From: Ylistrum balloti
Taxonomy: Eukaryota
DNA length: 64,000 nucleotides
Reading direction: 5' to 3'
NCBI RefSeq assembly: GCF_031769215.1
Contig: NW_026782413.1
Span: forward strand, 310,001-374,000
In this document: one piece after another, positions 19,401 through 64,000 of the stretch
How positions within the stretch are numbered: the first letter of the stretch is position 1
Layout: every line of letters starts with the position of its first letter
The notes under the pieces: model-generated
Told to the model about the DNA's origin: nothing
The model's database searches: none
What the model saw: only the letters and a program-made list of their open reading frames with translations
Made by a program: the position numbers and the translations under genes

Positions 19401-22400
19401 TGACTTCTACCACACAGACTTATTGACTTCTACCACACAGACTTATTGACTTCTACCACACAGACTTATTGACTACTATCACACAGACTTATTGACTTCT
19501 ACCACACAGACTCATTGACTTCTAACACAAACTAGTGTGTCTTTATTGTATTGACTGCATCACACACAGACCCCATTATAATAATTGTAATATGTAAGAA
19601 ATAAACAAGAAAAGACAAATATTCAGTATTTTTGTTCATGATTAACATTCCTAATTGGAATATTGATCACACTTTAATATCAGATAAGCATATCAGAGCA
19701 TGTCTGTTTTCCATCATACCCAAGGAGATGACAGGTGAATTATATCAAGCTAAAATTTTAGGGGAGGGAGGGATAATGAATGGTTGGAGATTCTTTTCCA
19801 CTGTATATATTGTTTACTGAGAAGAAAAACCCCTGCCAGTGTATTGTATCCAGTGGACAAAAGTCAGACCTTATGAATGATTTACAATGTCAATTTTACA
19901 CACCATAAAGGTAAATATGGTTGGCCTAGGTTTGTCCTGGCTATCACACCCTGGTCAACAAAACTGTCCTAATATGTTATCAAAATATATTTATTCACCT
20001 AAGTCAACACACTCTGAATTCTGGGGACTTAACAGGGTGGTCAAAGTAATATTGTTAAATTACGTTGTGTCCAAATAGTTATGTGTAAGACACTTGATCA
20101 GAAATATAACAGAGTAAGTCAATATTGGATTGATGTGTCATATCAGTGGTGATATGATTCACAGGAATATTTCAAAAATGTTGATACTAGCTCCGAATTC
20201 AGTTTGAGATTATTTGTATGCTTATTAAACGAACAATTAACCTGTTGAATATGACTTTTTAAAATGAAAATTTCAGTTGGAATATTTCAACTGTCAGCTG
20301 TGTATGTAATTATTTACCTGTAGATTCCAATTCACTGTAATGTCATATTCATACCATATACCAGTAGTCACTCGGCACGTCCAGACATGATACATTAGAA
20401 GACTCTATAAGGCCAAAAAGAAAAGAAAATTTGTGTTTCTTGTTTCTGGTCCGTCCCTGTTCTTTGCTACCAACCTTTTTTCAACATTTTGGCAAAAATT
20501 TGATCCAGAAATGATTTTGCTTCGGGTTTTTTTTCCTGGTGATCCCTAACAGCACTGGCACTGGAGGTGAATTCAATTCAGATGCTTGACATATACCGGT
20601 ATTTATACAGACTGATCTTTCTGGGCATATAACAGTTACCTTGCCATTATTGGTCTTAGTTGTTTTAGCCATGAAATTTATATAATCCATAACTTCATTA
20701 GCGTTCATAAAAAGCAACTGTGAGATCAGATACATTTCTTAACCATCTCTACTGAATGTTATAACTCTGTATTGCTTTGACAGATGTTGACCAAACTTTT
20801 TTCCATTTTTTAAAATTTATTTTCTTTGTATAACCCCCACCTCCAAACAAGTTGGGGTTGGTATATAGGAATCACCTTGTTTGTCAGTCCATCTGCTAAG
20901 ACCCTTTTAAAGACAATTCCTTCTATACTGTTCAATGGAACTCCATTGAAAACTTAGCACTTGATAATACAGAAAAGACTCACTTTCGAAAATAAAACAT
21001 CATCACAGATTGTGATATTCAGCATGGTAAATATTTCATAATACACACAGGCAATGCTTATACATACCTGACTCATAAGTATGAACCCGAATCCATATAA
21101 AGTAATTCAGAGTCGGAGCCAAAAGTAACTATTATCCATGCTACCCATGGTCTCCATTTTTTCTGGGCAGAAACAGGAAACACAGATTTTTTTTTGTGTG
21201 GCCTGATGTCTGAATCTATCTATAGATACAACACTTCATCAGAAGTCTTTATAATATCTATATCTATATAGATCTATATCAATCCATCAGGTGCTTATAA
21301 CATCTGTATAGAGGTCGATATAACAACCACAGGAAGTCCTTAATATACCTTTTCCGTGGCATGAAAAATAAAACTCTTATTAAATACCCTTAGTTTTACA
21401 GTAATATTCTTAATGAAGAGTAAAAACAAATGGAATTTATGTCATTTTAAAATTTGACATATATTTAGGTAACATTATAAATGTCTGACAGAATTGGCAA
21501 GACTGAGCGTGCTTTAATGGTATTCATTAATCTCTATGTGTTCAAATTTAAATCACCAAACTAGAATTCAAGATCATTACCCTATAAACATTTAAATGTC
21601 TGAACAGTATCCATAATGTGTTTACAGAGAAAAAAAAGCAGGTGCTTGGGACAAAAGACTTTTTTGACTGACACCTGACCATATTTTAGGATGGAATTTT
21701 TTAAACATTTTTATCCGCTTGAATGATTTAACTTTGATATACTTCGGTACTGTCGGCCATGTCTCTCCTATAATTACCAGTGTTAATGTACATACAAAGA
21801 CAGTGGAAAAACCTTGACAAGACTGAGCGATCACTTCATAACAGTTGGAAATGATACTATTTGAATAGTAAACTAGTGTGTGGACTGGCTAACCTGACGG
21901 ACATGTTTACACCTGTAAAGTCCACCTCCAGTCCATATGTAAATTCTTCATCTACAACTCTATTGAAGGGACTAATTACTTTGTCATCAATTTCTCTAGG
22001 GAATATCTCATCCTTACCAACAATTCTTGAATCTCTGCATTTAAATACCTTTTTTGGGCAGCAGGGTATTAAGCCCTGAAACTAAGTCACCAGAGTTATG
22101 CCTCCTAGCCCCCCTCCCCACACACACACACACACACACCCACAACCCTCTACAATCTAAATTTGTCATATACTATTGACATGGTATTTTGTATTTACAT
22201 TTAGTCTAGTAAACTACAATAACAGTTTAAATTACTCTGTTTTAACAATTCCCAGGTATACTGTACAGTGATAACTCCCTACTCAATACTCCATAGAATC
22301 AGAGAGAGAAACCCTGATAACTCCCTACTCAATACTCCATAGAATCAGAGAGAGAAACCCTGATAACTCTCTACTCAATACTCCATAGAATCAGAGAGAG

Positions 22401-43241: not shown

Positions 43242-44976
43242 ATGGCGTCTATTTTACTAATGGCAACGCCGACCGAAAAAGTTTCGTTTTCTGACTCCGT
43301 AACGACAGGAGACGGCAAAATTTGCCCATCGCCAATGTCCACCTTCGGAAGCGATGTCATGGACAACTTGTATTTGCATGCGTCAAACGCTGGTGTTTTT
43401 GTAAGAACAGACTACTCTGAGTTAGCATCCAAGGCTACAAATAATCTGCAACGATTAGAAGGTAAATATAAGAAGAGAATATGTGCATATGCTTAATACG
43501 CATGACCTACTTTCGCTTTGTTTTGTTTCGTTTTTTATTGTCATGCGGTAAATCATGTTAGAATACATTTAATTGGACTTGAAATAGTATTCAATCAGCG
43601 TTATATGTGAATAGAATAGTCGATAAAACGCAATGATCATATATCCTATCAACTTATTTCGAGGTGATTTTGAGAAAGATACACGTAAAGAGTGCATACT
43701 TATCAAATATATGTATATCTCTGCATGGTTCTGTAAAGATTCGCCTTACAAATTTGTCTGAATAGTTGAAACTCTCTGTCATGGTAGGAAGGTGGCTAAA
43801 GCTCTACAGACTACTTTGAGTCAATAAATCGTGTATGATAGAGAATACTGAACACACAGTGTTGTGTTATCAAAAGCAGTCATGATAACAAATGTTTTAT
43901 ACCTCATTCTAACAGAACTGACAACAGACAAGATGATAAACAACACGGACGATAATCTTGATGAAGATGAAGATACTGATGAAGTAATCAATGAGATTGT
44001 AACTATTGCTGTTTTTGCAACCAACATGAGGAAAAATGACATTCAGTGTGAAAAAGATAAATATCATATTAAAATTAAAAGAGAAGTGAACATTAAAAAA
44101 CACAAAAAGAAAAATGTGAAGAAACAGAAGAGGAAGAATGTTGCAGAAGATTTTGGCTTTTTAAATGTATCCCTTTTCCCTCGGCCATGTCATGTTCCAG
44201 AAGATAATGATGAAAGTGCCTTGGAACGGTTTTATGCAGTAGAACAAAGTCTCAATGATTTTGAAGATTTAGTTGCACCCTATGAAAAAGAATTAGATAT
44301 TGAAGGAAGGCACACAAAAATGGATAAACACTTGCGTAGTGATAAAGACAGGAAAAAAACAAAAGCTCACATACAAGTAAAGGACAAATATTGTAAAAGT
44401 GTAAAAAACAACGGGGGACGTAAAAAGTTGTTTGTTCATCACAGAGTCTATAAACTCATGGAGCTCGAGATACAAAGACTTTCTTACATGCCAAGTCCAA
44501 AGAGGGCAACACGTGATTTACAGCGGGAAGAAATGAAGGCGATTAAGCACACTCCAGTTCGTCCAGCATACAATCCACATTTCAGGCCTGCCCCTCGAGG
44601 AGGCATCCAAAATTTGGCTTATGCCATTGACAACAACAATGCTGCACAGGACCTTGACAGTGCACTTGTGAATGTTCTGATAACACTTCAGCACAGGGAC
44701 CTGACACCCGAGGACTATGAAACACTTCTAAGACTGGATGAGAATGTGGCACCAAAAACATTACAGAAAGATGTTTTAGAATCGTTTAGGACTGACATTG
44801 TAAATGAGAGTGGGGTCCATGAAACATGTTCAATATGTATGGACCAATATACAATAGGACAATCTAGGAAGTTTCTACCCTGTAATCATGTTTTTCACAC
44901 AAACTGTATTGATATGTGGTTGGAGAATTCATCTCTGAATTGTCCAATTGATAATTTACCAGTGTCTAACAGCTGA
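43242..44976 (+). CDS. RING-H2 finger protein, probable E3 ubiquitin ligase (2 exons, 426 aa)
   Basis: Exon 43242-43461 (GAA G|gtaaat, phase 1) joins in frame to 43916-44976 (ctaacag|AA CTG). C-terminal C-x2-C...C-x-H-x2-H-x2-C...C-x2-D: CSICMDQY...LPCNHVFHTNCIDMWL...CPID, preceded by LQHRDLTPEDYETLLRLDE. AATAAA near 45594. Confidence 0.88.
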
Positions 44977-45689
44977 CAGGGAACGTGTGAATATCCCAAC
45001 TAATTATCACTTGAACATACAGTTTAGTCTTATGAACATTATAATTGCGGGAGTGTTTGTAAGGCTGTATGACTACTACAGAAATTATGACGTGAAATGT
45101 CACATGCCGTCTATAATTGCAGTTGTATGACTACTTGTAAGAAGTTGTTTGACTAATATTAAAGCATGTTTTGCCTTGATATGGCATTTATAGCTGTTAT
45201 AAATGACAGATTGATCACTGATTATATTTTAATTGCCAACACTTTCTTGCTGATTTATGAACATTCTGATTTTATCTAAACTCAGTTGTTCATTACTGAC
45301 AGTATAATGCTTTGTAGGGAATATTTTGATGGCGTTCCGTCGGTTTCTATGGTAACAATTGAGGTTTAATGATGCTCATGCAAGAAACAGGATTTGATGT
45401 CGGACAACTTCACTTCTGTCATACAGGTGTATGTAAGGAATTTACTTTCCAAATTTAATATTTTACCTTTACTGAATATGCTACAATTTACATATATTTC
45501 AGATTTATTTACATATTTTTTTTATAAAATATTTATTCTACAACTTGTATTGAAACAGTGCAGTTGAACGGTTTCTTTACATGACAATGTTTCAATAAAA
45601 AGACAAAACAAAATACATCAGTTTTATTTCTTATGAAGTTTTAAGTGTTTGTCAAAAACAATATGAAAACCTCCAATCTGTTGTCTGGG

Positions 45690-46200
45690 TGCCCTAGGGA
45701 CATAAGATATCCCACATCTTTTGGTGGTGACCTACATGTAGCTACATTGTGTAGTTGTGAAACAAATAGGTAACACATACTGCTCTGCTGTTGTTACCTG
45801 CATGCATAGAATTTCAAACAGATCTACTAGTACTTCTCAAGCAATAGTGATAAATAACACCACCATGGCCACCCAACTTAGATATCAAGGATAATATTTG
45901 TGAAATTTGAGAAAGATCCATACAACAAACTTTCTTGAACAAAATCTAAGATGGCCACTTCCAGTTGTCAGCCATTTCGATTTTTTTATCTGAACCCAAA
46001 TCTAAAGGCCACAACAAGGGACCACCAAGTGGAAACTACAGTATGGACAGACCAGGGATGAAGGGTGATTTGAATAACTCACTATCTGATGATTATGAAA
46101 GGAAAAACCTGTTAGACTGGACTTTGGCCAAGAGTCCAGAAGTTCTTGTGGCACAAGGCATTGTCATAGAGTTTGTGGACTTCCCTGCTAGATCTTAAGT
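45690..46200. mobile_element. Probable Helentron-associated repeat remnant
   Basis: gggtgccctagggacataagatatcccac start, tttgtgaaatttgagaaagatcca and accaagtggaaactacagtatggacagacc blocks. Pattern-based; it explains ORF 45965..46198. Confidence 0.4.
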
Positions 46201-46938
46201 ATACAAAACAAAAAGAAAAGTAGTAGGGGCTGGAACTCTCTGTTGTTGTCACATTCAAAGGAGTTTTTACTGCTAACTACCAAACAAATGAATATAAATT
46301 TTTAAATCCATTGATTACATTGTACATATAAGGAAAATATGTAAATAGAACAACATTACTTTAAAGTTGAATTTATTGATTTTAAACATACACATGACTT
46401 AAACCCTATAAAGTAAACATATAATGGTGTGGATTTTTGTTAGTATGTATAAGTCAAATAAGAAAAAGAGCAATATTTCCAAGATATGTCAGCACACCAC
46501 ATTTCCATAAAATATTGTTTGGGTGACATATATAATTAGTAGATGAAATCAGAATTATGAATTTCTCTTTTTGTTTTATCATTTATGAAAGCTGTCTACA
46601 ATAATATTACCTCTTATTAGCAAAAGTGGATAAAGGACCACAGCTTGATATAGTTTAATTGGCATGAACAATTGTGTGAAGACAGTGCCACCTGGTGTAA
46701 CTATACTTGCATACACAGGATTTTGAAAATATGAAAGCATGTATGTTCACATTTTTGTTACTTACACACTTAGAATACACATATAATAGGACCAATAAGA
46801 TACCTAGAAACTAAGTAACATAACTGTGGGTTTATTGATACTGGTAGTACGTCGTCTCGGGGTTAGTAAGTACATTTTTTATGTCTCTATATGAATCTGG
46901 TTGTCAAGCAAACCCAGTCCCCATAACGACAAAGATAG

Positions 46939-47090
46939 TACCGTAAATATTCGCGTATAGTGCGCACTCGCGTATAGTGCGCAGGTACTTTTTGGAGATC
47001 AGATTTTAAAAAAAAAATCTTCAGAAAAATTAATTGACTGGTCACTGCGACGAAACATTTGATGTGGTCTGATCCATTAATAATTAGGAA
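46939..47090 (+). mobile_element. Truncated pogo/Tigger-like MITE 5' end
   Basis: TA-CCGTAAATATTCGCGTATAGTGCGCACTCGCGTATAGTGCGCA, with the duplicated subterminal motif typical of such ends. The second end was not found. Confidence 0.4.
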
Positions 47091-47764
47091 ATCACAATGA
47101 GCGTGACCCTAACACAGGTAATTACCTTAAGTAAACAAATTTACCCAGGTGACCTAACATTTCATCTCGGAGTTTCTAATTACATATTTTATATCTGAGA
47201 AATGAATCTGGTTGTCAAGCAAACCCAACATCTGTAAATAATGTACATAAATATAAGGAAGTTCATGTAAGTCACGTGGTTTATTTTAGAATCTGCTTAG
47301 AATGTACACGAGAGTGATCAACTCCTCAGACCACCTGGGTGATGGAGTTAAAATTTGATAAGAGATTCCATCAAAACAAACACCTGTTACAATACCACAG
47401 TCCTTCTCAAACACTTGTATTGTTGATGGCGGTAGGGATAGCCCAGTTAGTTCGGCAAACAACATATTCATTCAGTGAATATATATATATATAAACACAG
47501 TCTGCTTGCTCATTGTGAAATACCTTCTGTACAGTAGCAATACAGTATTACAGGTGACCTACAGTATATACACACAGATCTGCCATATATTTTACAATTG
47601 ATATAGACCTGAACATAAATAACATTTTACATATGAAACAAACATTTTGAAGATCATGTCATACATATACTTTAGGTGAACATTCAAAATATACAAACAA
47701 TGTATAACAACTAGAACACATAGAGAATTTCAACATTTTACTTTGTATCACTATTAAATTTTAG

Positions 47765-48015
47765 AATTAAAACTGTTTTGTACTAACACCAGCCACGTGG
47801 CACTAATCACAAATTAAAATGGTTTTGTTCTAACACCAGTGACAGGGTATACTAATAACAAATTTAAACTGTTTTGTACTAATACCAGTGATGGGGTACT
47901 AATAAATTAAAACAGTTTTGTACTAACACCAGCGATGTGGTACTAATCACAAATTGAAACGGTTTTGTACTAACACCAGTGACAGGGTATACTAATAACA
48001 AACACCAGTGATAAT
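47765..48015. repeat. ~47-50-bp tandem repeat (about 5 copies), probably in the SelJ 3' UTR
   Basis: ttttgtactaacaccag...tactaat(a/c)acaaatt recurs. Confidence 0.8.
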
Positions 48016-48162
48016 GACAAATAAATTATAATAATTTTTTCAAGGACTTGAAAGATGAAATATTTCATCATAAAATATAAACACAAAAAACCACAGGTAA
48101 TCACTGAAACCTGATAAAATATCATTACTTATATAACAGCAACAAAAGACAGTAAAAAGTTC

Positions 48163-48227
48163 AAATTAGCATTTCCGATTCCATCTTCTCATCGAGTTTT
48201 GGATGGTACCATCATTAGCATTAACTT
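48163..48227 (-). promoter_or_regulatory. SECIS element (eukaryotic type II) in the selenoprotein J 3' UTR
   Basis: Minus strand AAGUUA-augcua-AUGAU-GGUACCAUC-C-AAAA-CUC-gau-GAG-aa-GAUGGAAUC-GGAA-augc-UAAUUU. It shows helix I, the AUGA/GA quartet, a 9-bp helix II with one A-A mismatch, apical AAAA and a CUC/GAG ministem; it lies about 100 nt after the stop codon. Paired by hand. Confidence 0.8.
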
Positions 48228-48329
48228 ATCTCCCTTTTTAAAGTTTTGTTGTCCTTAGCATATGTGGTTTACAGACTCTGCCCCATCGACTTCATCAGTG
48301 TAACTGGAAACAATTCTTTGTAATAAAGT

Positions 48330-51300
48330 CTATTGGGGCGTTATAACACAGAGTTCTTGAGTAAGTTGTTCATTTTCTTTATATCTTATGGTCTTTTCCT
48401 TCCATTCGTCTGGAATAACATCCACACCATACTGTAACAGTGAGAACAAATATGAGAAACAGGCTCTTGTATCATTTACTGGTCAGGAGCTCTAAGTCAT
48501 GCCACTTCCATAGTTTGAAAATGTGTGAGCTGTGAGAAAGCTTGTATGTAACCTCCTGCACTATAACTCATACCTTCCTAGTACAGGTACTTACCCAAGC
48601 TGTGAGACAGGCCCTATGTAATGAAAATATAATATACTAGAGCTATTTGTCATACCTATATACTTACTTAAAAAACAGGCCCATATGTAATCTATTGCAG
48701 CTCTAATTCATAATCTTACTACGGGTATATACTTACCTGAGCTGTGAGACAGGCCCCTATGTAATCTACTAGAGCTGTAAGTCATACCCTTACTTTATAC
48801 TTACCTGAGCTGTGAGACATATGATATACTTACCTGAGCTGTGAGACAGGCCCATATGTAATCTACTAGAGCTGTAAGTCATACCCTTACTTTATACTTA
48901 CCTGAGCTGTGAGACATATGATATACTTACCTGAGCTGTGAGACAGGCCCCTATGTAATCTACTAGAGCTGTAAGTCATACCCTTACTTTATAATTACCT
49001 GAGGTGTGAGACATATGATATACTTACTTGAGCTGTGAGACAGGCCCCTATGTGTTCTATTAGACCTGTAAGTCATACCCTTGCTATATACTTACCTGAG
49101 CTGTGAGACAGGCCCCAATGTAATCTACTAGAACTGTAAGTCATACCCTTACTATTTACTTACCTGATCAGTGAGACATATGATATACTTACTTGAGCGG
49201 CGAGACAGGCCCCTATGAAGCCAGCTCGTGAGCTGTTGCAGCCTCCATTACGAATGGTGGCTTTGACTGCTGCAGTATATTCAGTGTGGGAAACTACTCC
49301 ATGTAAAGCCAGTTGGAAAGACCCAGGCATTACTGCAATAACCAAAGTGAAACAACTAGATAATCTAAGCTTAAAATGTCTACAAACTAAAACCATTAAA
49401 GTTGATACTTAGTATCTTGAAAGTTGTCTATGCCAGACGTAATCAGGACCTATTATTCATGATGGCACTAACCAGGACCTAGGTTATTCATAGTGGAACT
49501 ACCATAATAAGGACATAGTTTATCCATACTGGCGTTACAATAGTCAGGGACTAGGTTATCTATACTGGACCTAAAGAGGGCCCACAACCCTATCTATGCT
49601 GAACCTTATCAGAACCTAGGTTATCCATACCGGAGCTACCATAACCAGGACCTAGGTTATCCATACTGGAGCTACCATAACCAGGACCTAGGTTATCCAT
49701 ACTGGAGCTACCATAACCAGGACCTAGGTTATCCATACTGGAGCTACAATAATTAGAACCTAGGTTATCCATACTGGAGCTACAATAATCAGGACCTAGG
49801 TTATCCATACTGGACCTAAAGAGAGCCCACAACCCTATCTATGCTGAACCTTATCAGAACCTAGGTTATCCATACTGGAGCTACCATAACTAGGACCTAG
49901 GTTATCCATACTGGAGCTACCATAACCAGGACCTAGGTTATCCATACTGGAGCTACCATAACCAGGACCTAGGTTATCCATACTGGAGCTACAATAATCA
50001 GGACCTAGGTTATCCATACTGGAGCTACCATAACCAGGACCTAGGTTATCCATACTGGAGCTACAATAATCAGGACCTAGGTTATCCATACTGGAGCTAC
50101 CATAATCAGGACCTACAAACTACAAATCTATACTTAACCTAAAGAGGATCCACAACCCTATCTATGGTGGACCTAAAGAGGGCCCTCACCCCTATCTATG
50201 GTGGACCTAAAGAGGGCCCTCACCCCTATCTATGGTGGACCCACCTAAAGAGGACCCACACCCCTGTCTATGGTGGACCTAAAGAGGGCCCTTACCCCTA
50301 TCTATGCTGGACCTAAAGAGGGCCCTCACCCCTATCTATGCTGGACCTAAAGAGGGCCCTCACCCCTATCTATGCTGGACCTTAAGAGGACCCACAACCC
50401 TATTTATGGTGGACCTAAAGAGGGCCCTCACCCCTATCTATGCTGGACCTAAATAGGGCCCTCACCTCTATCTATGGTGGACTTAAAGAGGACCCTCACC
50501 CTATTTATGGTGGACCTAAAGAGGACCCACAACCCTATCTATGGTGGACCTAAAGAGGACCCACACCCCTGTCTATGGTGGACCTAAAGAGGGCCCTTAC
50601 CCCTATCTATGCTGGACCTAAAGAGGGCCCTCACCCCTATCTATTTAGGACTTAAAGAGGACCCTCACCGTATTTATGGTGGACCTAAAGAGGACCCACA
50701 CCCCTGTCTATGGTGGACCTAAAGAGGGCCCTTACCCCTATCTATGCTGGACCTAAAGAGGGCCCTCACCCCTATCTATGGTGGACCTAAAGAGGACCCT
50801 CACCCCTATCTATGGTGAACCTAACGAGGGCCCTCACCCCTATCTATGCTGGACCTAAAGAGGACCCACAACCCTATTTATGGTGGACCTAAAGAGGGCC
50901 CCCACCCCTATCTATGCTGGACCTAAAGAGGGCCCTCACCCCTATCTATGGTGGACATAAAGATAACCCACACCCCTGTCTATGGTGGACCTAAAGAGGG
51001 CCCTTACCCCTATCTATGCAGGACCTAAAGAGGGCCCTCACCCCTATCTATGCTGGACCTAAAGAGGGCCCTCACCCCTATCTATGGTGGACCTAAAGAG
51101 GACCCACAACTCTATTTATGGTGGACCTAAAGAGGGCCCTCACCCCTATCTATGCTGGACCTAAATAGGGCCCTCACCTCTATCTATGGTGGACTTAAAG
51201 AGGACCCTCACCCTATTTATGGTGGACCTAAAGAGGACCCACACCCCTATCTATGCTGGACCTAAAGAGGGCCCTCACCCCTATCTATGCTGGACCTAAA

Positions 51301-54300
51301 GAGGGCCCTCACCCCTATCTATGGTGGACCTAAAGAGGACCCACAACTCTATTTATGGTGGACCTAAAGAGGGCCCTCACCCCTATCTATGGTGGACCTA
51401 AAGAGGGCCCTCACCCCTATCTATGCTGGACCTAAAGAGGACCCACAACTCTATCTATGCTGGACCTAAATAGGGCCCTCACCCCTATCTATGCTGGATC
51501 TAAAGAGGGCCCTCACCCCTATCTATGGTGGACCTAAAGAGGACCCACAACCTTATCTATGGTGGACCTAAAGAGGGCCCTCATCCCTATCTATGGTGGA
51601 CCTAAAGAGGACCCACAACTCTATCTATGGTGGACCTAAAGAGGACCCACAACCCTATCTATGGTGGACCTAAAGAGGGCCCACACCCCTATCTATGGTG
51701 GACCTAAAGAGGGCCCTCACCCCTATCTATGGTGGACCTAAAGAGGACCCACACCCCTATCTATGGTGGACCTAAAGAGGACCCCCACCCCTATCTATGG
51801 TGGACCTAAAGAGGACCCCCACCCCTGTCTATGGTGGACCTAAAGAGGACCCCCACCCCTGTCTATGGTGGAAGAGGACCCCCAAAGAGGGCCCTAAAGA
51901 GGACCCCTATGCACCCCTATCTATGCTGGATCTATAGAGGGCCCTCACCCCTGTCTATGGTGGACCTAAAGAGGACCCCCACCCCTGTCTATGGTGGACC
52001 TAATCAGGACCTAAAATCTGTTGACAATAAATAATGTTAATTACATGTCACTTTTCCAGTAATACCTCAGTCTATCCGTAGCTGTTTTGCCATGTCACTG
52101 TGGCTGGTCTGCTTTCCTTGTAAAACCTCACGTAGCTTGCCTATCATTGCCCGGTCAAGTTCCTGGGGGTTGGCCCTATTTGGGTCATCCATCTGTTTGA
52201 TCACAGCCTCTAGTACTCCCTCACTTGGGCCATTCAGAATGAAATGTTCAAGGATCCTGTATCACATCAAATAAACAGGATAATACTTTATTTCTGAAAC
52301 CAAAACATATCTAGATTTTTTCTTTTGATTTTATTACACAACTACAACAGTAATACTCTCACCCCAACATGTAGATACAAAAAATTTATACCTCAACTTG
52401 TTTCAGTCCAGTTAACCTCACTGTATTATGTATGGCCTTGAATTAAAAAAATCAATTTCCCTTAACATGTATCATTATTTGTCATGCCTCATCTCCTTAC
52501 TGTGTATCATAACGGTTATGGGCCTTTACAAACATACATATGTAAAGTGACCCAGTTACCAAATCAATCAACATTTTCACAAAAAATTACCGACATGAAC
52601 ATCTAAACATGGCCAAAAATATTTCTGTACAGTTTCACTAAAATTGGTTCCAAAGTTTAAGAGAAGTCTGGACAAGATCACTGGAATCATAGGTCTTATT
52701 TGGTTACCATGGCAACTGTTGACATTGGATATTTTGAATAACGGTACCATTGTAAATACCATTCTTCAAAACCTTTATATATTAATTTTCAGCAGGATCA
52801 GACAATACATTATGATGTTTCTCAATTTTGACCAATCAAAAGCCTTCGTTATGTTTCCACAGTAACATCCCCTACTATAGTAACATTACCTTGCTGCACA
52901 CAGTGCCACTACTACGGTAAAGTCAGACTCCTGAGTGATACGGACAACCTCTTCAGCTATGTTTAACATCTTGGGATGACCAGCATACATAGCTACCACT
53001 GGGACAATACGAAGAACACAGTCTATCTGTTCATCTGTAGGTGACCCTGCCAAAACAATTAGAAAAACACATAAACCGGGTCAAATTTACTGATTAACTT
53101 CTAACAAAGGTATATAGAAACCATGTAGGTATGAAGAGAAGCTGAATAAGCATTTATCAAGCAGGAAACGTTCTTTACAGGTACATGTATTAACCACTTA
53201 TATAGAACTGGTTTATAAACCTAGGATATTTACTGTCAATAAAAGCATGTTTAGAAAGTAATTTACCTGTTTCTTCTTTGCCTGCCTTATGATTAGCTAG
53301 GAACTCTTTTATGCTGAAGTGTCTCCAGGGCCCTTTGATAGGAAATGTCTTTTTCACAGCATCTATTGTAAAAGATTTATAAACCTCAAGATCTATGATA
53401 TACATCTGACTCAATAGTTAACGAGATACATCAAACTCAACAGTTTACTGAATATATCTGACTCAACAGTTTACAGAATATGTGTGACTCAACAGTTTAC
53501 AGAAAAAATCTGACTAAACAGGTAGCAAATTATGTTTTATCTATACTTGTATGTATAAAATTTGCATGGCAGACACATATTGTAGTATCATATATTTATG
53601 ATTTACCTACCTGACTTGTCTTTATAGGCAGCATTGACTACATGTTCATAGTCAGACTCTGGTCCAAAGAATGTATACGTAGCATTCTTAAGTGACTGAA
53701 TGTCCAATCCTACAAAAGACACAACATGTTGTAAACTTAGGCTTTAAAACACTTGTCACATATATTCAACCAAATAAAATGTTTCTTCCGGATGTTGAGA
53801 ACAGGAAATCCTAGGAAATTCCTGGATGAATCCCCAGGAAATTCTATATAGGATAATCCAGAGAAAAACATTAGGAGTATTTAACAGCACATGTGAGCCA
53901 TCAATACATCCAAAATTATGTTTAATGTGAAGTTTCATAGCAAAAATATTTCTGTCCCTCTACATTACATATCTTAAATCATTAGATACTAAGAAAAAAT
54001 ATTGTCAACTCCAGAAATCAATGAATAATACCCCAAATGATTGTATTTGTGTTCATAATTGTTCCTGCGAGTATCTATGTCAAATTCCCTTGTAGTTTGT
54101 AACACAATATATTCATGGCGACTGTTCCCGACATCAACACCCCTAAAACTAAAATTGTAATTCCTGATATTATGCGTTTTTTTCCCTGATTTTCTATGTA
54201 GTTGGTAGTGATTGATTGAATGAATGATTGATACTGTGAAAGCCGATCGCTTGATGCCGAGACCTGTACCTTTATTCTCCACTAATGATTTCAGAATTAC

Positions 54301-56110
54301 ATAGGCTTGGTCTCCATATCCACTCTGTCGGCCTGTTGGTATGCAGTAAAAAGGATTGGCAGAAGGCTCCCAGAATGTAATGTCTTCTGTTTCACCAATC
54401 AGATTATCCAGTTTATTTTTGTCATATATCCAGTGAAGTGGCTGAGCTGTTGATGAAAGATTTAGATTGTGACAAAACCCTACATTGTAACTATAAAACT
54501 TGATAATCTGAAGATCAAATGGGCATAAATGAATATTTCAAAACAGTTTCATTCATGTTATGATGACTTATCAGATCTACGTGACAGCATGAACAGCATT
54601 TGATTTTATCATATCTGGATGCTGGGACAAAAAGATTTTTGAATGGGATCAATATGGGCATACCATCAATCCATCACCCTTCGCTCATAATTCTAATCAA
54701 GTTTGAAATATCTCCATTGGAAATTAAACAAATTATGATCAAAAATCTATTTTTCCTATATAAGCTAAAGTAAAAAATTGTAACCACTCCCCACAGGGAA
54801 ATGTGAGACCCTGGGGCCATGAAACTCACAATTTTGGTAAAGCACTTTAAGATACTTCCATCCACTAAGAGAATTTGATTCTACCATATCTAAGCATTGA
54901 GAAGAAGATTGTTGAAAGTTTAGTCAATTTGACCCTTTTGATCCTGCCCTTCATGCCTTTGTTGGATGGTTACCATATAATTCAGTATTATGGTTAATCT
55001 TAAGCCAGGGAAGGATTCTGCAAAATTTCATTAAAATCAGTTCTAGGGTTTCTAGGGTGAAGAAGTCAAAAATGCATAACTGTTAACCGATGCAGGACAC
55101 ACAACGCTGGAGGTGATCGCAACAGGTCACTCTGTTAAAACAACACACACAGGTACCTTAAATGTTATAACAACACACTGCCCTATTTGTGTACATGTTT
55201 TTGGGACAAACAGGACATAGATTTTTTCAGTTTTGGGACAAACAGGATTAAACCCTCTGATGAGACTTTGTGTTAGGTGACCTAATAACAAGTCAATCCG
55301 TTCATGTATGTAATCTTACCTTCTACAAGGTATAAGGTCAATTTCTGGGTCATTTTACACCTATGACCTACTGTTCAGTGTTACCTAATGCAGGAATGTA
55401 TAATAAACTCTCCTCTCCTTACAGTTGTTATCTTATCCTATCTACACATACCTGTACCTCTTTGATGTATAATCAATGTGGACCTAGCAATTACCAACCT
55501 GAATAAAGCTATTTGTCCGCCAGTGAGAAGTGAATCTCATTTTTATATATATTTTTAAAAAAATACAAATAGATTAAAGTGACAAATCACAAATGTTACA
55601 CAAGTTCTTTGGAAAATTACTCAGCTTTTTAATGTCATTTATTTAAAGATGATTTTCTCCATATTTCGGACAGAAAGTGGTTTACAATATGGGGTGGTAT
55701 TTCAGCTGTAAGGAGCTTCAGTATGCATTTTGTTTTACAGATATCAAAAGTCAACAGAGATTATTTTCACAAAAGTTAACACAATCAATTTGAAAATTCT
55801 AACGTTGCTTATTTTGAAAATATCAGTTATGTATTTTTGAAGAAAAAATATTTCGTGTAAACAGCAAGGCTAGTTAACCTAAACTTCTTCGCTAAAGCGT
55901 TATAAAGAGATATTGGTAGTTTACCGTTTGTTATTATACGTCTCTGTACGTAATATCTATATCTAATTACTTTAAACAGCCAATTCTACATCTACCAAAC
56001 ACATGAAAGCGCTACATTGTAGCACTACATCACAGTTGTATATTACCAGCAGCATCGGCCACCACAGCCCCGAGGACGGCAGCTGTCCGTCGCCCCTCCA
56101 CTGAACACAT
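48330..56110 (-). CDS. SELENOJ: Selenoprotein J (ADP-ribosylglycohydrolase / J1-crystallin family), 7 exons, 318 aa, with in-frame UGA = Sec
   Basis: Exons 56047-56110 (MCSVEGRRTAAVLGAVVADAA), 54270-54446 (AQPLHWIYD...SANPFY...GRQSGYGDQAYV), 53267-53392 (FPIKGPWRH), 52890-53046, 52066-52256 (...QLRID-TGA-G), 49193-49332 (MPGSFQLALHGV...GGCNSSRAGFIGACLAAQ), 48330-48431 (YGVDVIPDEWKEK...TAG). Total 957 nt, all phases consistent, and a SECIS lies downstream. Confidence 0.92.
48450..49192 (-). repeat. Intron 6 of SelJ built from tandem copies of the exon-6 3' end plus splice donor (68+29 = 97-bp higher-order unit)
   Basis: Plus strand acttacctgagctgtgagacaggcccctatg repeats versus the real junction acttacttgagcggcgagacaggcccctatg at 49187-49217. 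Confidence 0.9.
49445..50112. repeat. 36-bp minisatellite with a ~245-bp higher-order duplication (SelJ intron 5)
   Basis: Unit ggacctaggttatccatactggagctaccataacca; the block starting ggacctaaagag occurs at 49567 and 49812. It explains ORFs 49590..49832 and 49835..50089. Confidence 0.93.
50135..52015. repeat. 34-bp minisatellite (about 55 copies, SelJ intron 5)
   Basis: Unit atggtggacctaaagagggccctcacccctatct; period 34 (50164 vs 50198). Confidence 0.96.
52540..52810. mobile_element. Possible Helentron-associated repeat remnant in SelJ intron 4
   Basis: aaattggttccaaagtttaagagaag and ggttaccatggcaac blocks resemble the family seen at 45690-46200 and 54560-55140. Confidence 0.3.
54560..55140. 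mobile_element. Probable Helentron-associated repeat remnant in SelJ intron 1
   Basis: ccctggggccatgaaactcacaattttggtaaag...tttgacccttttg...ccatataattcag...ggacacacaacgctggaggtgatcgcaacaggtcac has the same architecture as 4870-5340. Confidence 0.45.
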
Positions 56111-56189
56111 CTCCACACAAATGTCAAATCACGCTAACACAGTTGTCGTTCCTAACTCAATTAGGTCACATAATATATACGTCTCTGGT

Positions 56190-56220
56190 ACCACCAATAT
56201 AGAAAAAAGTGGCGGGAAAT
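56190..56220. promoter_or_regulatory. Candidate SelJ proximal promoter motifs (CCAAT box, E2F-like site)
   Basis: CCAAT at 56194-56198 and GGCGGGAAA at 56211-56219, 85-110 bp upstream of the ATG. Motif match only. Confidence 0.3.
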
Positions 56221-57421
56221 ACAAGTTTTTCACTACGAACTTAATGCTTTCTATTTTTACTATTTCCAAAAGAATTAGGACATCCTGAATCAGGGCCGGC
56301 GATTCTAAAACCTATCGACGTTTAACTTTATTCAGAATCAAGGCCAGCGATACTAAAACCATATGACATTGCTTTGTTTTAATTCAATGACACACACACT
56401 ACAAAGCAATAGAGATAATTTCTGTCTCTTAACTGATTTTTTTTAAAATACAAATATTCACATTTATTAATTAGTAAAATGTAAATACTGAAAAATGTGA
56501 TTATTGACATTAAATGACAGAAAATGTTGATCTAGAGGCCAAAAAGATTATATCTACGTGTCTAGATCGGTTAATGGTTACAGCTACATTTATATCTACA
56601 TTTCTGTAGTACTGTGATCAGCTGTGTTTTCTTTATCACATCTGTACTCTTATCATATATTACGTGTGTTTGTTTTTTTCTCTCTCTCTTAAAATACTCT
56701 TTATCAGTGTAGTAACGCCCGTTACGTACATTTTGTGCTTCGGATTCGTTAAATACAACTAACGTCTTTGTTTCTTGTTTAGATACTTATCCGATGAAGT
56801 CCCTGTATCCAGTATTGGAGTGAGCCAAAACGTAAGGTGAATTAAATCCATTCATTTATCGATGACTTACAGAAATTGTAGTACGGTCTTGCTGTTTGTC
56901 ATGTTTTAGATACATAACCAATGTTGGTGTTTTTTTCTCCGCGTGATCCGTTATTCTTGTGTATTTATTTATTTATTTATTTTTACAAATTATGTGTTGG
57001 AGACTAACAGGCCTATAGATCCCTGAAGCTTTCTTATTCGCCTTTTTATGAATCGCTTATTTTCAAACTAACTGTTAAGAATTCCACACGATGCATGGTG
57101 TTTGGAGTTATATTATGGTCTGAAATATCTATGTTTAAGACAGTGATCATATCTGCTGTTTCTTTTGGGGTGATTATTGTCAGAACCTGGAAATTTTGAA
57201 TGATTTAAGGTTAGAACTAACTTAAAAATCAGTACAGTTATCATTGTATAGATGAATTTATATCAATATAATATTTAAGTTTAAGATGCTGTAGTCTGCT
57301 CTCTGCTGAGTAATTTATCTATCAAGCCGATTGGTGATTGTCATTGTGATTGTGATATCTCCTACAAAATTATTGATGATTTTTGTGACGTAATTCAATG
57401 AAGAAAACACAGGTTATAGCA

Positions 57422-57787
57422 TTCCAGTGTGATGTCACTATCTGCCTTGATCCAGTGTGATAGCACTATCTGCCTTGATCCAGTGTGATGTCACTATCTA
57501 CCTTGATCCAGTATGATGGCACTATCTACCTTAATCCAGTATGATGGCACTATCTGCCTTGATCCAGTGTGATGTCACTATCTCTCTTGATTCAGTGTGA
57601 TGGCACTATCTGCAATGATCCAGTGTGATGACACTATCTACCTTGATTCAGTGTGATGGCACTATCTGCCTTGGCCCAGTGTGATGGCACTATCTGCCTT
57701 GGCCCAGTATGGTGGCACTATCTGCCTTGATCCAGTGTGATAGCACTATCTGCCTTGATCCAGTGTGATAGCACTATCTACCTTGAG
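57422..57787. repeat. 28-bp minisatellite (about 13 copies)
   Basis: Unit ccagtgtgatggcactatctgccttgat. Confidence 0.95.
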
Positions 57788-59123
57788 TACACCATCATTT
57801 GTGTACACAAGTTCGTAGCTGCTGTCATGGCACAAGACCCAAATAAGCGAAAATTACAGATATAGGCACGTTTCTCTTTAAAGTTTCTAAAATTGTTAAA
57901 CATTTCTTTTAGCTACATTGTATTTATCGTAAAAGTTTATGTTTATATTTTGTATAACGTCATGTTAACAGCCAGTGTCATTTATGAACACTCCCAGGTG
58001 TACGCGAGTTGAGTGTGAATGTTGAGTGCACGTGTTTTAGGGAGGGTACGATATGTTCGTGTAAGCCTCGCTTTTACAGTGCGATACCCCAGACACGGGA
58101 GGAGTCACGGAGACGGAAGACCTGTCAATCAATCAATCAATCGACCAATTTAAAAAGTCCTATATATCTCGACCAGGTAGAATGACCCAAAATCTTTCTC
58201 AAAGAGACCAAAAGCGAGTCAGGGAGATATTAGAAAGAAGAAAGACATGTAGAAAAATAAATGATATAAAGTTTTTGTCGCCTCTTACCATCTTGCCAAT
58301 ATGGGCTATCGGTGCAATTCTTCGTAGTCATATTGATGTTACGAGTAAGTTACTATCAACGTCAGTGAAGTATTGTAAAGTTATAAACAGCGTAGAGAAT
58401 TCTTTTGATTTTATTATGAAGAGATATTACCTTTTAAAACATAAGTGAATCTTCCTTATATGGAGGGGAGGATATAGAAACCATCCCATTGACAATCTTC
58501 ATGCACAGGTCATATTGACGACATAAACACAAAATTATGTAGTTTGTGGAAACGCTGCATGCTATAGACACCGGAATCTGTATTTGGGGAAACACAAAAA
58601 AATCTTATTTCTATATCAAAAATACTAAAAGATGAAAATAAAATGAAAACAAAAACAAAAACAAAAAAGCCAAACAAACAATACAGACAAAAGCTATGAT
58701 ATGTAACAATTTTATTCTATATCACGTACACTTGTATTGCAATGAGAACCATATATGTATATGATAAAACTATGAAAAAATGAACCAACATAATTATATT
58801 GATATGAGTATATAACTACAGGGCACAGAATAGGTACAGTGAACATGTAGCTTCCTGTGGTAAACAATATCTTTCTATATCAATATATCATCTTGAAATA
58901 ATTCTTTGAACAAATTTTCTGGTATTTTACAGAGCTACTCTTTTTGGGATTTTTTTACATAAATTTTCCTCTCTCTTTCACAGAAATTTTACTTTCTTGT
59001 TTGTAGAAAGTTTCCTGTAATGAAACTCCATGTTTTGTAGTTCCTTGATGACCTTCATGCTCCAGATGTGAACATTGTATGATGTTTCTTGGCTATGTCA
59101 TTTTATAAATTTTATAAAAATAT

Positions 59124-60766
59124 TCATTTCTTCTTTTTCTTTCCGCCTTTCTTTCCTCCTTTCTTTCCTCCTTTCTTCCCTTTCTTTCCTTTTTTCCCCT
59201 TCCCTGATTTCTTTTTTTTAGTAGCACCATCTGGAAGTGCCCATTCTGGTACTTCCGGAACCTCACTGATTTCTTCCACTTCTGGCATTTCACCTTTCTT
59301 GGCGTCTCGAATGACATCCCAAGCCTCTGACGAATAACGTGCCAGGTCGATCGGGCTCACACCTGCAACAGTCTTTGCCTCTAAATTGGCTTTAGCCAGC
59401 ACCAGATGTTTAACAGCATCCGCGTGGTTACCTGTAATAGAGGTTGATAATGATACATCTTTACTAGCAGTCACTTACAGGTAACCCCTTATAGGTAACT
59501 ACTCACAAGTATCAACTCAGGTAACTACTTACACATAACCACTCACAGGTAACCACTCACACATAACCACTCACAGGTAACCACTTACACATTACTACTC
59601 ACAGGTAACCACTTACACATAACCACTCACAGGTAACCACTTACACATAACAACTCTCAGGTAAAAACTTACACATAACCACTCACAGGTAAAAACTTAC
59701 AAATAACCAATCGTAGGTAACCACTTAGAGGTAACCCCTCACAGGTAACTACTCACAGGAAACAACTCAGTTAACCACTCATAGGCAAAAAACAGGTAAC
59801 CAACCATAGGCACATGTATCTAGTTACGGGCAATTCATCATAGGTAACCTCCTACATGTAAACCATCCACAATACACCAAATATAGGTAACATATAACAG
59901 GTAACCATTAACAGGTAAATACTCAGATAACTTGTCACGGGTACATGTAACCCACCGATGATAACCGAAATTAAGTAGTCTGTATGTAGATTTTGTCCGG
60001 AATATTGGCGAACAAATATGTACTAAAAGGTTTGTACCGGTATTTCTAACAAACTGGTGGAAAATGTTCTAAGGTGTGACAAGCTAGACCGATACCCCAC
60101 CGACAAGTCAGTACTCACCCCTGGCAGCCAGATGGAGCGGTGTAACTAAGGATCCCACCACTACGTTGACATTGGCACCAGCCTCTATCAGCAATCTGAC
60201 GATCTCTGCATGACCACCTAGTAAAGTCGTGAATATGGGTGTTATATGCAAGCACATCAAATGAAAGTCGTTATATATCCATACACAATGTAATCTTGCA
60301 TGTACGTGTAGGTATTTTAAAAAGTTATCAAATGTTATCTTCGTGTTTTGTTAAATTATTTCAATATTTAGTCAACGGATGGACAAAAAAAAAACATCTC
60401 CATAGATATGGTACTATATTCTCCTGCGTGTTTTTAAAACGCATGTTTATAGTTGGTAGACGGAACTGAAAAGCTGAATAGCTCGAAAAGCCCATAGCTA
60501 TTAACAGATCGACAAATAGACCAAGGCGAGAACCAGACTCCCGAACATCATTTAGTTTCTCCTCGTAAAAAAATTAAATAAAAAATCATCTTACCCTCTG
60601 CTGCCTTTGTTATTGCATACATCCCGGTCCCATCCTTTATGTTCGGGTTCACTTTCAGTCTCATCATCTTTTGTACAGTACTGATTTCTCCCCGTTCACA
60701 AGCCGTCACTAAGTGCGTCTCCACGTCCCTATCTATAAACAATCGGGAGAGCGATGGAGCTGCCAT
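59124..60766 (-). CDS. Small ankyrin-repeat protein with a Lys/Gly-rich C-terminal tail (3 exons, 192 aa)
   Basis: Exons 60595-60766 (LVTACERGEISTVQKMMRLKVNPNIKDGTGMYAITKAAE), 60119-60217 (99 nt; GGHAEIVRLLIEAGANVN...TPLHLAAR), 59124-59431 (GNHADAVKHLVLAKANLEAKTVAGVSPIDLA...KGGKKKKK). Phases 1/1, 579 nt in total. Confidence 0.9.
59470..59920. repeat. 14/28-bp tandem repeat in intron 2 of the ankyrin gene
   Basis: cacaggtaaccact / tacacataaccact alternate, decaying toward 59920. Confidence 0.85.
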
Positions 60767-61149
60767 ATTCTAGATTTCAAGTATGGCAGTGGTCACAAAC
60801 AAGGAAAACCCACAATCAGACACATAATTTGCTACATAGACAGACAAACACAATTCTCCAACCGTCGTTAAGTTTTTGTTTACACCGATACCGCCATGTT
60901 GGAATGACACAAAAGAGTTCCACAGGGAGTAGCTATTATTTCAAACTGTAGAGTTGTGCATTTTAAAGGTTGATTGTATGTTTCTCTAGATTTGTTTTTA
61001 AGCTGTTTGAATGTTATGCTGTAGAAGACTGTCCAATGATAATAAAAAAAATGTGATTAATTTTGAATGCGTTAAACGTGTTAACTTTCTAGAAAACATA
61101 TAAAGCGTTACATACACGTACCGGAAACAGTTTTACAAGTGTTGCATGA

Positions 61150-61990
61150 ACTTTGTAATATTATTTTAACGCATCGGTACTGCTATCACATCAAAGGATG
61201 TCTCCATCGCTTTGAATATTAGAAAATACTTAATAAGTACTGGCGTATCCTAATAATTTGTACCCACTTTTTAAAGGCAAACGTTTGCAATTGACATCAC
61301 ACTACCAAATAAATAATTAATGTTAAATTCATAATTTTTCAATACAAATCGACAGCATTAAACAAGCATTCATTTATTTTAAATTGATATTGAAGCAATA
61401 TGTTCTATCATAATCCTAAGAATTGATAATTAAACTTAGATGAATATTCTGATGTACAAGTGACTACAATTAAACAAAGAAAAAAACTTGACTTTGGAAT
61501 AATTTAGATCTTTATATGGAACACGTCATTCTCAACATTTAAAAATCTTTTTTCGTAAGTTAAATTATGTAAATATTCCCTCTAATTATATGATTGGTAA
61601 CCGGAAAACTAATCTTTCACTCGCCAAATTAAGATATCGATCAAGCATTCTAAATAATAACTTATTTCATGAGAATTTTATTTATTTTAAACTCTGTCAG
61701 TGTGGACATCATACTGAAAATACTTACCATTTCTTCTTTAACAGTAACAGGTACATAAATAAGAGCATAACATGGTATCATGAATTATCACACTAGACCT
61801 ACAACTTATTTTACGTTGAAGTCCTGAATTATCTGTTGAAGGAAACGAAAGACTTTGTCTCCACACTTAGCAGTATATTTGTGATATAAATAGATTTTGA
61901 TTTCTATACCTCTCTCTCAACCACTCCTCTCCCCTTTTATCATTTCCTCCTTACCAGCAACGCCCCTTCCTTTCCCAACATATCAAAGAT
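61150..61990 (+). mobile_element. Degraded 3' end of a non-LTR retrotransposon (CR1/L2-like)
   Basis: ORF 61590..61796 AKLRYRSSILNNNLF...LCQCGHHTENTYHFFF resembles the post-RT C-terminal CxCG...E...H.F motif of invertebrate LINEs; the flanks are frameshifted. Confidence 0.45.
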
Positions 61991-62289
61991 GTCCCTTCAA
62001 CATAATGGTATATGTAGTCATATATCAGTCAGTAAAATACACATAAATGTTTTAGTTAAATAAAGGACGGAGTCTGTGATCTTTCTCGTCTCAAACGGAA
62101 CAGAAGGAAATTAATGACTCGAGAGAAAGTAACTAAATGAAAGAATTATGAACAGTGAAAAGTCGAATGAACGGAATAGAGGAATGTTAACTAGTGCCAC
62201 ATGGGTCGAGAAAGATTTCACTTACTCAACCTAAAACATTATTCATCAAATTATTCAAAAGTTTCCGTACTTTTCTTCAAAAGTGAACA

Positions 62290-62645
62290 TGAAGATGGCC
62301 ATCACTTTCCAACCCCCTCCCCACCCCCATCACTTTCCACCCCCCCCCCCAACCCCCAATTGTCCCAGAAGTGACTTTTTGAAACGTGTAAATCCGTTGA
62401 GTTTTTTTATGGGGGGGTGGCTGGTTGCGGGTCCCATTTTTCAGTTTTCTGCATCTGTATTTTTCATATCTATATTCCCGTGATTTTATCGGTTCTACTT
62501 GCATTCTGTCGAAACTAACCTCGCCAAAGCTTCACGCCTTCGGCGCTCGCGACACACGGCTTCGCCGGCGTTGCCAGGTTTTGCACACAACCCCCCCCCC
62601 CCCCCCCCCCCCCCTCCCCAATTTTAGATCCTGGCTACGCCACTG
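62290..62645. mobile_element. GC-rich MITE remnant with a hAT-like terminus
   Basis: Ends gatcctggctacgccactg (reverse complement CAGTGGCGTAGCCAGGATC), with poly-C tracts and cttcggcgctcgcg/gcttcgccggcg internal motifs. The other end was not found. Confidence 0.4.
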
Positions 62646-64000
62646 ATTATTAACTGTTGTTTCTTTGTTGCTAACTAACATCTTTAACTACATATATTGG
62701 AAGTCAACAGAGCTATACTACTAAAAGTGTCTGATAACATCAGTTATTACAGTATAATTAGTTTTCCAAAGTATGATTTACTTGTAAATGAAATTTTACC
62801 GCAGGTGTTTCGTTTTATTTTGCATTTCGAAAAGTGATTTACCCGTTCTAGAATTTCGTTTTATCTCGTATCACGCATCATTTCAAATATCATGTGCCAA
62901 GTTCCGTTGCTGCTACAGACTGTTATTTTTTCTGCTCTATTTTCTGCTTTATATCGTTAGTATTTTGTGTTGTGCCGACTTCATGTTTTTGTGATCAGTG
63001 AATGTATATTATACATTTTCTGATATAGACACTCACTACATCGTTCAAACACACCGTACAACTGTTTGGATGATTAGGATGAGAACAGTTGTCCAACTGG
63101 AAAACAAGTGGGATGCCTGGTTAATTGATATTCCAAACAAACCTGACAATGTGAAGTTGTCAAGATCAAATATATGTTTTAACACAATTAGAATCAATTC
63201 TTCTTTCATGGACAGTTTCCTTTGTTTATCCCGTTTCTTTTGCTATTTCTCCTACCATTTTTCATTTTCAAAACTTTCTTCACCTTTCCAAAACAATACT
63301 TTGGAATAGAAATTAGTTATTAGATTTTGAAATGTTTACAGAAACAACAATTATGGCAAGAAAATATTAAAAACTTTCATCACTGGTTGCAATCTTATCC
63401 ACAATCCTTTTCCAATCTGGATTTTTTCCGCATTTTCAGCCTCAATTTCAGGGTTTTTTGCTATCAGCCGAGTATTTCCCTTGTGAGGTCTTTACATTTC
63501 TTCCGATATCAATACAGATGTAGACATATAAAGCTTAATTAAAATATAAGATACTGGTGGCAAAGTATAATGGTATTGACTAGGTAATAAGCCCATCAAG
63601 TGAAAGAAAGACGGCACAAACTGAAATTTAATCGAACACTGGTGTAATTAGGCTATATAGAGTGAATTACTATTGTTTATAGAAAAAGTTAATTATGATG
63701 GGCTTATTGCCAGTCCATTATTGTTGTACCTGGTCTACGCAAAAATAAGTTTGACATATTTCTAATCTTATATTCAAAATCATATTGTCAAGTTGACAAT
63801 CACCTCATTCACCTTGATTTACAGTCTCATTGACAAGCCTTGTTAACATGGCAAAGCAATTTTTAGCTTTTGTTTTTGTTCCTTTTTTAAGCCAAGAAGT
63901 GCCTTATTTACACGTTTGAGATAATGGAATGGGTTTTGAGTTAACATAAATATTAAAACTTAAAAATGAAGAATCACAAATCGAGGAAAAAATATACGAA

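Follow-up and report, generated by a model that had tools for sequence, protein, structure and literature searches.

Does an in-frame TGA end a protein, or is it read as selenocysteine (Sec)? The question is raised by one gene in a stretch of 64,000 nucleotides from Ylistrum balloti, a scallop of the family Pectinidae (positions 310,001 to 374,000 of contig NW_026782413.1, assembly GCF_031769215.1; hereafter the window, whose own numbering is used throughout). The gene lies on the minus strand, from 56110 to 48330, and comprises eight coding exons separated by introns that are all of the GT-AG type. The exons total 1026 bases, i.e., 341 codons and a TAG stop, for a J1-crystallin-like product with the ADP-ribosylglycohydrolase (ARH) fold. 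Codon 261 of the 341 is a TGA, and 80 further codons follow it in frame before the TAG. A first-pass annotation, made from the letters alone, had read this TGA as the Sec codon of a selenoprotein J (SelJ, or SELENOJ) gene and had guessed the host to be a mollusc, which a pectinid is. From the evidence set out below, we conclude that the gene is very probably the Sec-encoding SelJ orthologue of Y. balloti.

The sixth coding exon is preceded by ...gatacag and ends with CAG CTA CGG ATA GAC TGA G, after which the intron begins with gtattactgg, its donor GT (52065-52064) standing one base past the TGA. The acceptor, ...ggttattgcag, ends at 49333, and exon 7 opens at 49332 with TA ATG CCT GGG TCT TTC CAA. 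The spliced frame across the TGA therefore reads ...QLRID-[TGA]-VMPGSFQLALHGV, and it later passes GGCNSSRAGFIGACLAAQ and IPDEWK before the TAG. The joining of TGA-G/gtatt, in phase, to TA ATG CCT GGG TCT TTC (the slash marks the splice site) had been proposed in the first-pass annotation, and we confirmed it in the minus-strand sequence. The proposed frame of 80 codons to the TAG also stands; the exon had been counted as the fifth and is in fact the sixth, and the strand of the gene is corrected to minus.

We then turned to sequencing reads, mapping four runs over 52020-56200, a range that avoids the long minisatellites of the intron 49333-52065 and in which the exon 7 side appears solely as a loose end. 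One run (X1) carries the same organism label and comes from another sample, and two (X4 and X5) carry a second organism label; the contigs of these three runs are unspliced, which identifies them as DNA. The fourth (X2) gave a spliced contig of 623 bases whose pieces are exons 6, 5, 4 and 3, with a depth of zero over the introns, and is therefore RNA. At 52067-52069 no alternative letter was found in either the DNA or the RNA: where TGC or TGT would have betrayed a sequencing error, all four runs read TGA. The RNA contig (record 8) stops matching at 52066, and its overhang, GTAAAGCCAGTTGGAAAGACCCAGGCATTA on the plus strand, has as its reverse complement TAATGCCTGGGTCTTTCCAACTGGCTTTAC, the opening 30 bases of exon 7 at 49332, so that the mRNA reads ...GAC UGA G/UA AUG CCU.... 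Another donor that would skip the TGA had been named as a possibility, and the contig instead uses the predicted donor, joining 52066 to the acceptor at 49332. The same run contains every sampled word of 48150-48431, which spans exon 8 and the hairpin considered below. The coding variants in the runs number four, namely three synonymous ones (52199, 52916 and 53280) and Met165Ile (52988 C>T on the plus strand), the latter being present in X1, X4 and X5 and not in X2.

These reads bear directly on the explanation to which we give the least credence, practically none, namely that the gene is a pseudogene or that the TGA arose by an error of sequencing or assembly. Nothing was found in its favour. 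The codon is identical across two labelled organisms, the gene is spliced and expressed, three out of four coding variants are silent, and purifying selection is strong on either side of the TGA. On the DNA and RNA read evidence we rejected a sequencing error, a pseudogene and the use of another donor alike. The features of the gene are collected in Table 1.

Table 1. Features of the Ylistrum balloti SelJ gene in the window
Feature	Position	Strand	Remarks
Coding exon 1	56110-56047	-	ATG at 56110, ...GAVVADAA motif, donor gtaata; start of XP_060078009.1
Coding exon 2	54446-54270	-	spliced product equals P0007 (residues 1-260)
Coding exon 3	53709-53611	-	RNA contig of X2 (record 8) spans 53611-53711
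Coding exon 4	53362-53267	-	RNA joint 53362/53611; RNA piece 53266-53362
Coding exon 5	53046-52890	-	Pfam profile 120-168; RNA piece 52889-53045
Coding exon 6	52256-52066	-	...GAC TGA G/gtatt; RNA piece 52066-52255, loose end matching exon 7
Predicted Sec codon TGA	52069-52067	-	codon 261; same in four runs; aligns with the Cys of salmonid SelJ and the TGA of L001-L012
Phase-1 intron, starting one base past the TGA	52065-49333	-	largely minisatellite arrays
Coding exon 7	49332-49193	-	(V)MPGSFQ...GGCNSSRAGFIGACLAAQ; Pfam profile 234-277, E 7e-5
Coding exon 8, to TAG 48332-48330	48431-48330	-	YGVDVIPDEWKEK...; junction AAQ/YGVD as in Argopecten and L003 mRNA contigs
SECIS-like hairpin	48229-48160	-	~100 nt past the TAG; minimum-energy fold, conserved in scallop-type sequences

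In the public annotation, the protein terminates at the TGA. The RefSeq entry XP_060078009.1, "crystallin J1A-like [Ylistrum balloti]" (260 aa), matches residues 1-260 over their full length with 100% identity, which independently confirms exons 1-6. The RefSeq protein covers these exons only, as the first-pass annotation had forecast for a standard pipeline, and it loses the last 81 residues, among them the most conserved motif of the domain. The models of Mizuhopecten, Argopecten and Pecten (257-265 aa, 83-85% identical) have the same endpoint, and those of Lingula, Dreissena, Pomacea and Asterias likewise end at the TGA. Coding sequences (CDS) cut short at the Sec codon are a common and documented annotation error (PMC12822975). 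The correction restores 81 residues to the Y. balloti protein, and the models of seven other genera share the fault. Note that in Dreissena polymorpha (L010) a separate gene of 68 residues is annotated at 19687-20540, ~0.7 kb past the shortened SelJ model, with a weak ADP_ribosyl_GH match; it is probably the post-UGA part of SelJ, split off by the annotation.

What lies past the TGA belongs to the same domain as what lies before it. The product of exons 1-6 (P0007) matches the Pfam family ADP_ribosyl_GH (PF03747) with 69.6 bits over positions 1-207 of the 287 of the profile, and a C-terminal open reading frame (ORF) of Argopecten takes up the profile at 234-286 with 39.6 bits. Exon 7 of Ylistrum by itself also matches (Table 1), collinearly with P0007; single exons otherwise gave weak matches, the domain being evident with P0007 and the C-terminal ORFs. 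As the matches are collinear on both sides, the annotated protein is an incomplete domain, the rest of which lies in frame past the TGA.

Outside the lophotrochozoans, the nearest relatives that bear a name are fish proteins (~50% identity, E ~1e-90), many of which are called selenoprotein J. In the salmonid selenoprotein J, also named crystallin J1A (343 aa), ...PNS-C-GLPGSFQ stands opposite ...RID-[TGA]-VMPGSFQ of the scallop. This protein has the same fold and length, with a Cys at the position of the scallop UGA, and needs neither recoding nor a Sec insertion sequence (SECIS); in salmonids, the Sec of SELENOJ has been converted to Cys (PMC13134290). The jellyfish J1-crystallins would belong to the same class of relatives. 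An exhaustive search with the salmonid protein returned 1658 relatives, and we counted the column opposite the TGA in the best 149 representatives: it holds Cys in 99 and another residue in 12, is a gap in 15, and in 23 the sequence ends at or just before it. It is also one of nine invariant columns in an alignment (A4) of 33 full-length Cys forms. The expectation of the first-pass annotation that homologues would carry Sec or Cys here is thus borne out by the salmonid Cys, by the 99 relatives and by the TGA of others.

The TGA and its surroundings recur in relatives. A search with exon 7 led to three short ORFs of 79-91 residues on intron-less, mRNA-like contigs. In each contig, a TGA closes an ORF of the family lying upstream and is followed by one codon, (M/L)PGSFQ or LPHSLQ, and a conserved tail. 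The layout of TGA, one codon and (L/M/I)PG(S/A)FQ is found in two Argopecten sequences (L001, from the Argopecten irradians metatranscriptome SRR23580857 (PMC10989825), and L002) and in four further contigs (L003, and the Logan contigs L005, L006 and L007). Four genomes (Lingula anatina, Pomacea canaliculata, Dreissena polymorpha and Asterias amurensis) have an annotated CDS that closes with TGA, after which come one base and a GT donor; the following exon starts with (L)PG(S/A)FQ in Lingula, Pomacea and Asterias, and in Dreissena the TGA and donor alone were seen. Triplophysa tibetana, a fish whose protein is named selenoprotein J in UniRef, has the same TGA g/gt and the same acceptor before LPGAFQ. 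Overall, a phase-1 donor lies exactly one base past the UGA in six out of six genomes (scallop, zebra mussel, apple snail, brachiopod, starfish and cypriniform fish; L008-L012 and Ylistrum), the matching exon having been located in all except the zebra mussel. The gene structure of the SelJ type, with a phase-1 intron after the UGA, is thus present in the scallop as in fish SelJ, and an intron shared from scallop to fish must date back to the bilaterian ancestor or earlier. A divergent SelJ-like gene was also met in a contig (L004, JGI 3300030738) that probably comes from a non-animal eukaryote: it reads GKS-TGA-G-LPHSLQ, is intron-less there, has close neighbours on the opposite strand, and carries a longer SECIS-like hairpin, with an additional apical stem, ~110 nt past the stop.

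The gene shares several features with ray-finned fish SelJ. Identity is ~50% over the N-terminal 250 residues, with the same ADP_ribosyl_GH domain; the UGA occupies the same column, two residues before LPGxFQ; in Triplophysa it is followed by the same phase-1 intron; GGC-x-(C/S)-S replaces GGDTDT; and the SECIS, a candidate in the scallop, is placed in the 3' untranslated region (3'UTR). The two differ in their hosts, that of the present gene being a bivalve mollusc, and in the second Cys of GGC-x-C-S, a Ser in Ylistrum and Argopecten.

We next compared nonsynonymous (pN) and synonymous (pS) differences on either side of the TGA. Between Ylistrum and Argopecten, pN/pS is 0.090/0.617 in the N-terminal part and 0.141/0.434 in the C-terminal part; between Ylistrum and L003 it is 0.178/0.759 in the C-terminal part. 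By this measure, the region past the TGA evolves as coding sequence under purifying selection. This is hard to reconcile with the TGA being a true stop, which would leave a protein of 260 residues that lacks the C-terminal third of its domain and would turn exons 7-8 into 3'UTR. XP_060078009.1 and the models of the seven other genera do end there, and UGA may terminate at low selenium, which makes some shortened product plausible. Yet the 80 in-frame codons past the TGA have a pN well under pS and continue the Pfam match collinearly (profile 234-286), the TGA layout is kept from fish to scallop, full-length Cys forms carry C at the column, the 3'UTR carries a conserved SECIS-like hairpin, and a domain cut at position 207 of 287 would lose its most conserved motif. 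We therefore regard a true stop as very improbable.

The 3'UTR hairpin is a candidate SECIS, and very likely a genuine one, judging from its shape and its conservation. In its minimum-energy fold, a lower helix is followed by an internal loop whose 5' side has AUGA (48215-48212) and whose 3' side has GA (48175-48174). The second helix spans ten positions, one of them an A-A mismatch, and the apical loop begins with AAAA (48200-48197) and contains a small stem of 3 bp. The Argopecten and L003 contigs carry the same element after "gctaATGA". In the three scallop-type sequences, 84% of the cells pair, versus 30-47% when the partners are slid, and both partners have changed in four pairs, of which three belong to the second helix. 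A covariance model (R1) built from these three sequences, the Ylistrum site among them, gave one strong match in the window, of 88 bits, which is the Ylistrum site itself, as expected for a training sequence. Candidates of the same architecture were found independently in L004, L007 and Lingula. The first-pass annotation had placed a SECIS at 48163-48227, and this placing is upheld by shape and conservation, the element remaining below the thresholds of Rfam.

Another rival has the UGA decoded by a near-cognate tRNA, be it for Trp, Cys or Arg, or passed through programmed readthrough independent of Sec-tRNA. Such readthrough draws its support from the sub-threshold Rfam scores, and from the fact that the case for Sec is built on sequence. 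Against it, the hairpin shows all the SECIS hallmarks at the right spacing and is conserved, and the column is Cys, the usual counterpart of Sec, in 99 of the 149 relatives counted. Molluscs, moreover, reportedly make heavy use of Sec, going by the title of a 2019 study by Baclaocos et al. Fish orthologues with the same TGA and intron are published as selenoprotein J (PMC13134290). We consider non-Sec readthrough even less probable than a true stop.

Several results nonetheless weigh against the assignment of the gene as a selenoprotein, most of them concerning the hairpin. The covariation is based on three sequences only. The best match of R1 outside its training set, in the Lingula 3'UTR, reaches 17.4 bits with an E of 0.27, and the model missed the candidates of L004 and L007; a MAFFT alignment of the six SECIS candidates was unusable for the divergent ones. 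An Rfam scan of 44000-64000 at E<=1 gave no match, and a scan of 301 bases gave as its sole SECIS match SECIS_5, at 17.3 bits; the Rfam scores, 17.3 and 26.3 bits, compare with a gathering threshold of 50, and SECIS_1 had no match in any scan. The hairpin is AU-rich with an unremarkable folding energy (z -0.94), and the minimum-energy structure of the Argopecten copy is not SECIS-shaped. For exon 8 and the 3'UTR, the support from the RNA of the species itself consists of sampled words and not of mapped reads, and the exon 7-8 junction is backed by the mRNAs of other species. Finally, we infer Sec insertion at codon 261 from the parts of the gene and not from selenium shown in the protein.

Beyond the hairpin, a 47-bp tandem repeat in five copies occupies 47765-48002, ~160 nt past the SECIS candidate. 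There is no AATAAA or ATTAAA before 47285, and the 3' end of the transcript was not located.

Taken together, the parts of the gene point to the standard eukaryotic mechanism of recoding. The mRNA would present a UGA at codon 261; the 3'UTR hairpin would recruit SBP2, eEFSec and Sec-tRNA; the UGA would be decoded as Sec; and translation would proceed for 80 codons more, completing the C-terminal third of the domain. Note that the last exon junction follows the UGA at a distance of 141 nt and that, by the vertebrate rule, a stop so placed makes an mRNA a candidate for nonsense-mediated decay. If the UGA were read as a stop, the SelJ mRNA would thus be a candidate for such decay under selenium shortage.

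We know of no function for SelJ, and the residues around the Sec column offer a starting point. The family profile matches solved chains with E values from 8e-20 to 1e-8: MJ1187 (1T5J), ARH3 (2FOZ), DraG (2WOC), a Thermus thermophilus protein (2CWC) and mt-SAF23 (6SGA), an assembly factor of the trypanosome mitoribosome. In canonical ARH3 and DraG, the Asp of the TDDT and GGDTDT motifs are the Mg2+ ligands of a binuclear site. In the profile alignment to MJ1187, GGDTDS stands opposite GGCNCS (GGCNSS in Ylistrum), and the Mg2+-site Asp of an active ADP-ribosylglycohydrolase of the ARH1/ARH3/DraG type are not retained. Across the representatives, 52 have C and 46 have D at the first former Asp position; at the second, C is found in 70 and A in 25; most relatives read GGC-x-C-S, the second Cys being Ser in Ylistrum and Argopecten. 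In canonical ARH proteins, unlike in SelJ, the Sec/Cys column faces a non-conserved loop residue, the V of GTGV in MJ1187 and the G of SGYV in Lmo0067. The same alignment puts TDDT opposite SGYG, in an N-terminal part of low confidence (3 bits), which tells against our reading of these sites.

Because the Asp are replaced and the Sec/Cys column is invariant, Mg-dependent hydrolysis appears less likely than a selenol/thiol centre, and from the alignments SelJ more likely uses such a centre, for redox or metal binding, than Mg-dependent ADP-ribosylhydrolase activity. A bolder proposal, which we hold to be possible and on balance doubtful, is that SelJ-type proteins are neither crystallin-like structural proteins nor ADP-ribosylhydrolases: the Sec/Cys, together with one or two Cys at the former Asp sites, would form, in what was once the ADP-ribose cleft, a selenol/thiol centre for redox chemistry or metal binding, with the Sec and the same intron present in the bilaterian ancestor and kept in molluscs, brachiopods, echinoderms and fishes. 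If true, such a centre would represent chemistry new to the ARH fold. In any event, an invariant Sec/Cys near Cys at the former Mg-Asp sites provides a concrete and testable hypothesis on SelJ function.

How far does this extend the known range of the family? SelJ was described in 2005 by Castellano et al. in ray-finned fishes (as cited in PMC13134290 and PMC3316567). According to one account, SELENOJ was confined to actinopterygians and sea urchin, cnidarians having Cys forms, and amphioxus has since joined the list (PMC13134290). Among six invertebrates, Lottia (a mollusc) and Capitella (an annelid) included, it was found in amphioxus alone (PMC3473315), and it also occurs in some algae (PMC7539508). 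Our literature search returned no report of SelJ in molluscs, though an oyster SELENOJ may already be listed in the 2019 study by Baclaocos et al., and "selenoprotein j" is the name already given to a database entry from Plakobranchus, a sea slug. Judged by the layout of their genes and contigs, bivalves, a gastropod, a brachiopod and a starfish have a Sec-containing SelJ, and the intron beside the UGA is the one seen in fish. The shared Sec position and intron favour a bilaterian origin, with many losses afterwards. The finding is a sound correction of annotation and a modest widening of the known range of the family, not a new kind of system.

The introns of the gene are rich in repeats. The one past the TGA is almost wholly minisatellite over 49469-52011: 51 copies of a 34-bp unit (50137-51872) and 14 of a 36-bp unit (49610-50115) are grouped into higher-order repeats of 209-245 bp. 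Between exons 7 and 8, the intron (48432-49192, minus strand) contains seven copies of the end of exon 7 with its donor, in the form GTCTCACAGCTCA[A/G] followed across the boundary by GTAAGTATA, as a tandem array of 97 bp; the real donor of exon 7, at 49192, reads CTCGCCGCTCAA followed by GTAAGTAT. Splicing at a repeated donor copy would meet a stop after AAQ, and the mRNAs of other species back the junction AAQ/YGVD. In intron 1, over 54540-55380, the word depth of the DNA runs rises from ~10-20 to 2,000-4,300 with many rearranged joints, suggesting an interspersed repeat or transposable element present in very many copies. Upstream of SelJ and on the same strand, ORFs at 59124-60766 with ankyrin-repeat-like sequence and a Lys/Gly-rich tail probably represent a neighbouring gene.

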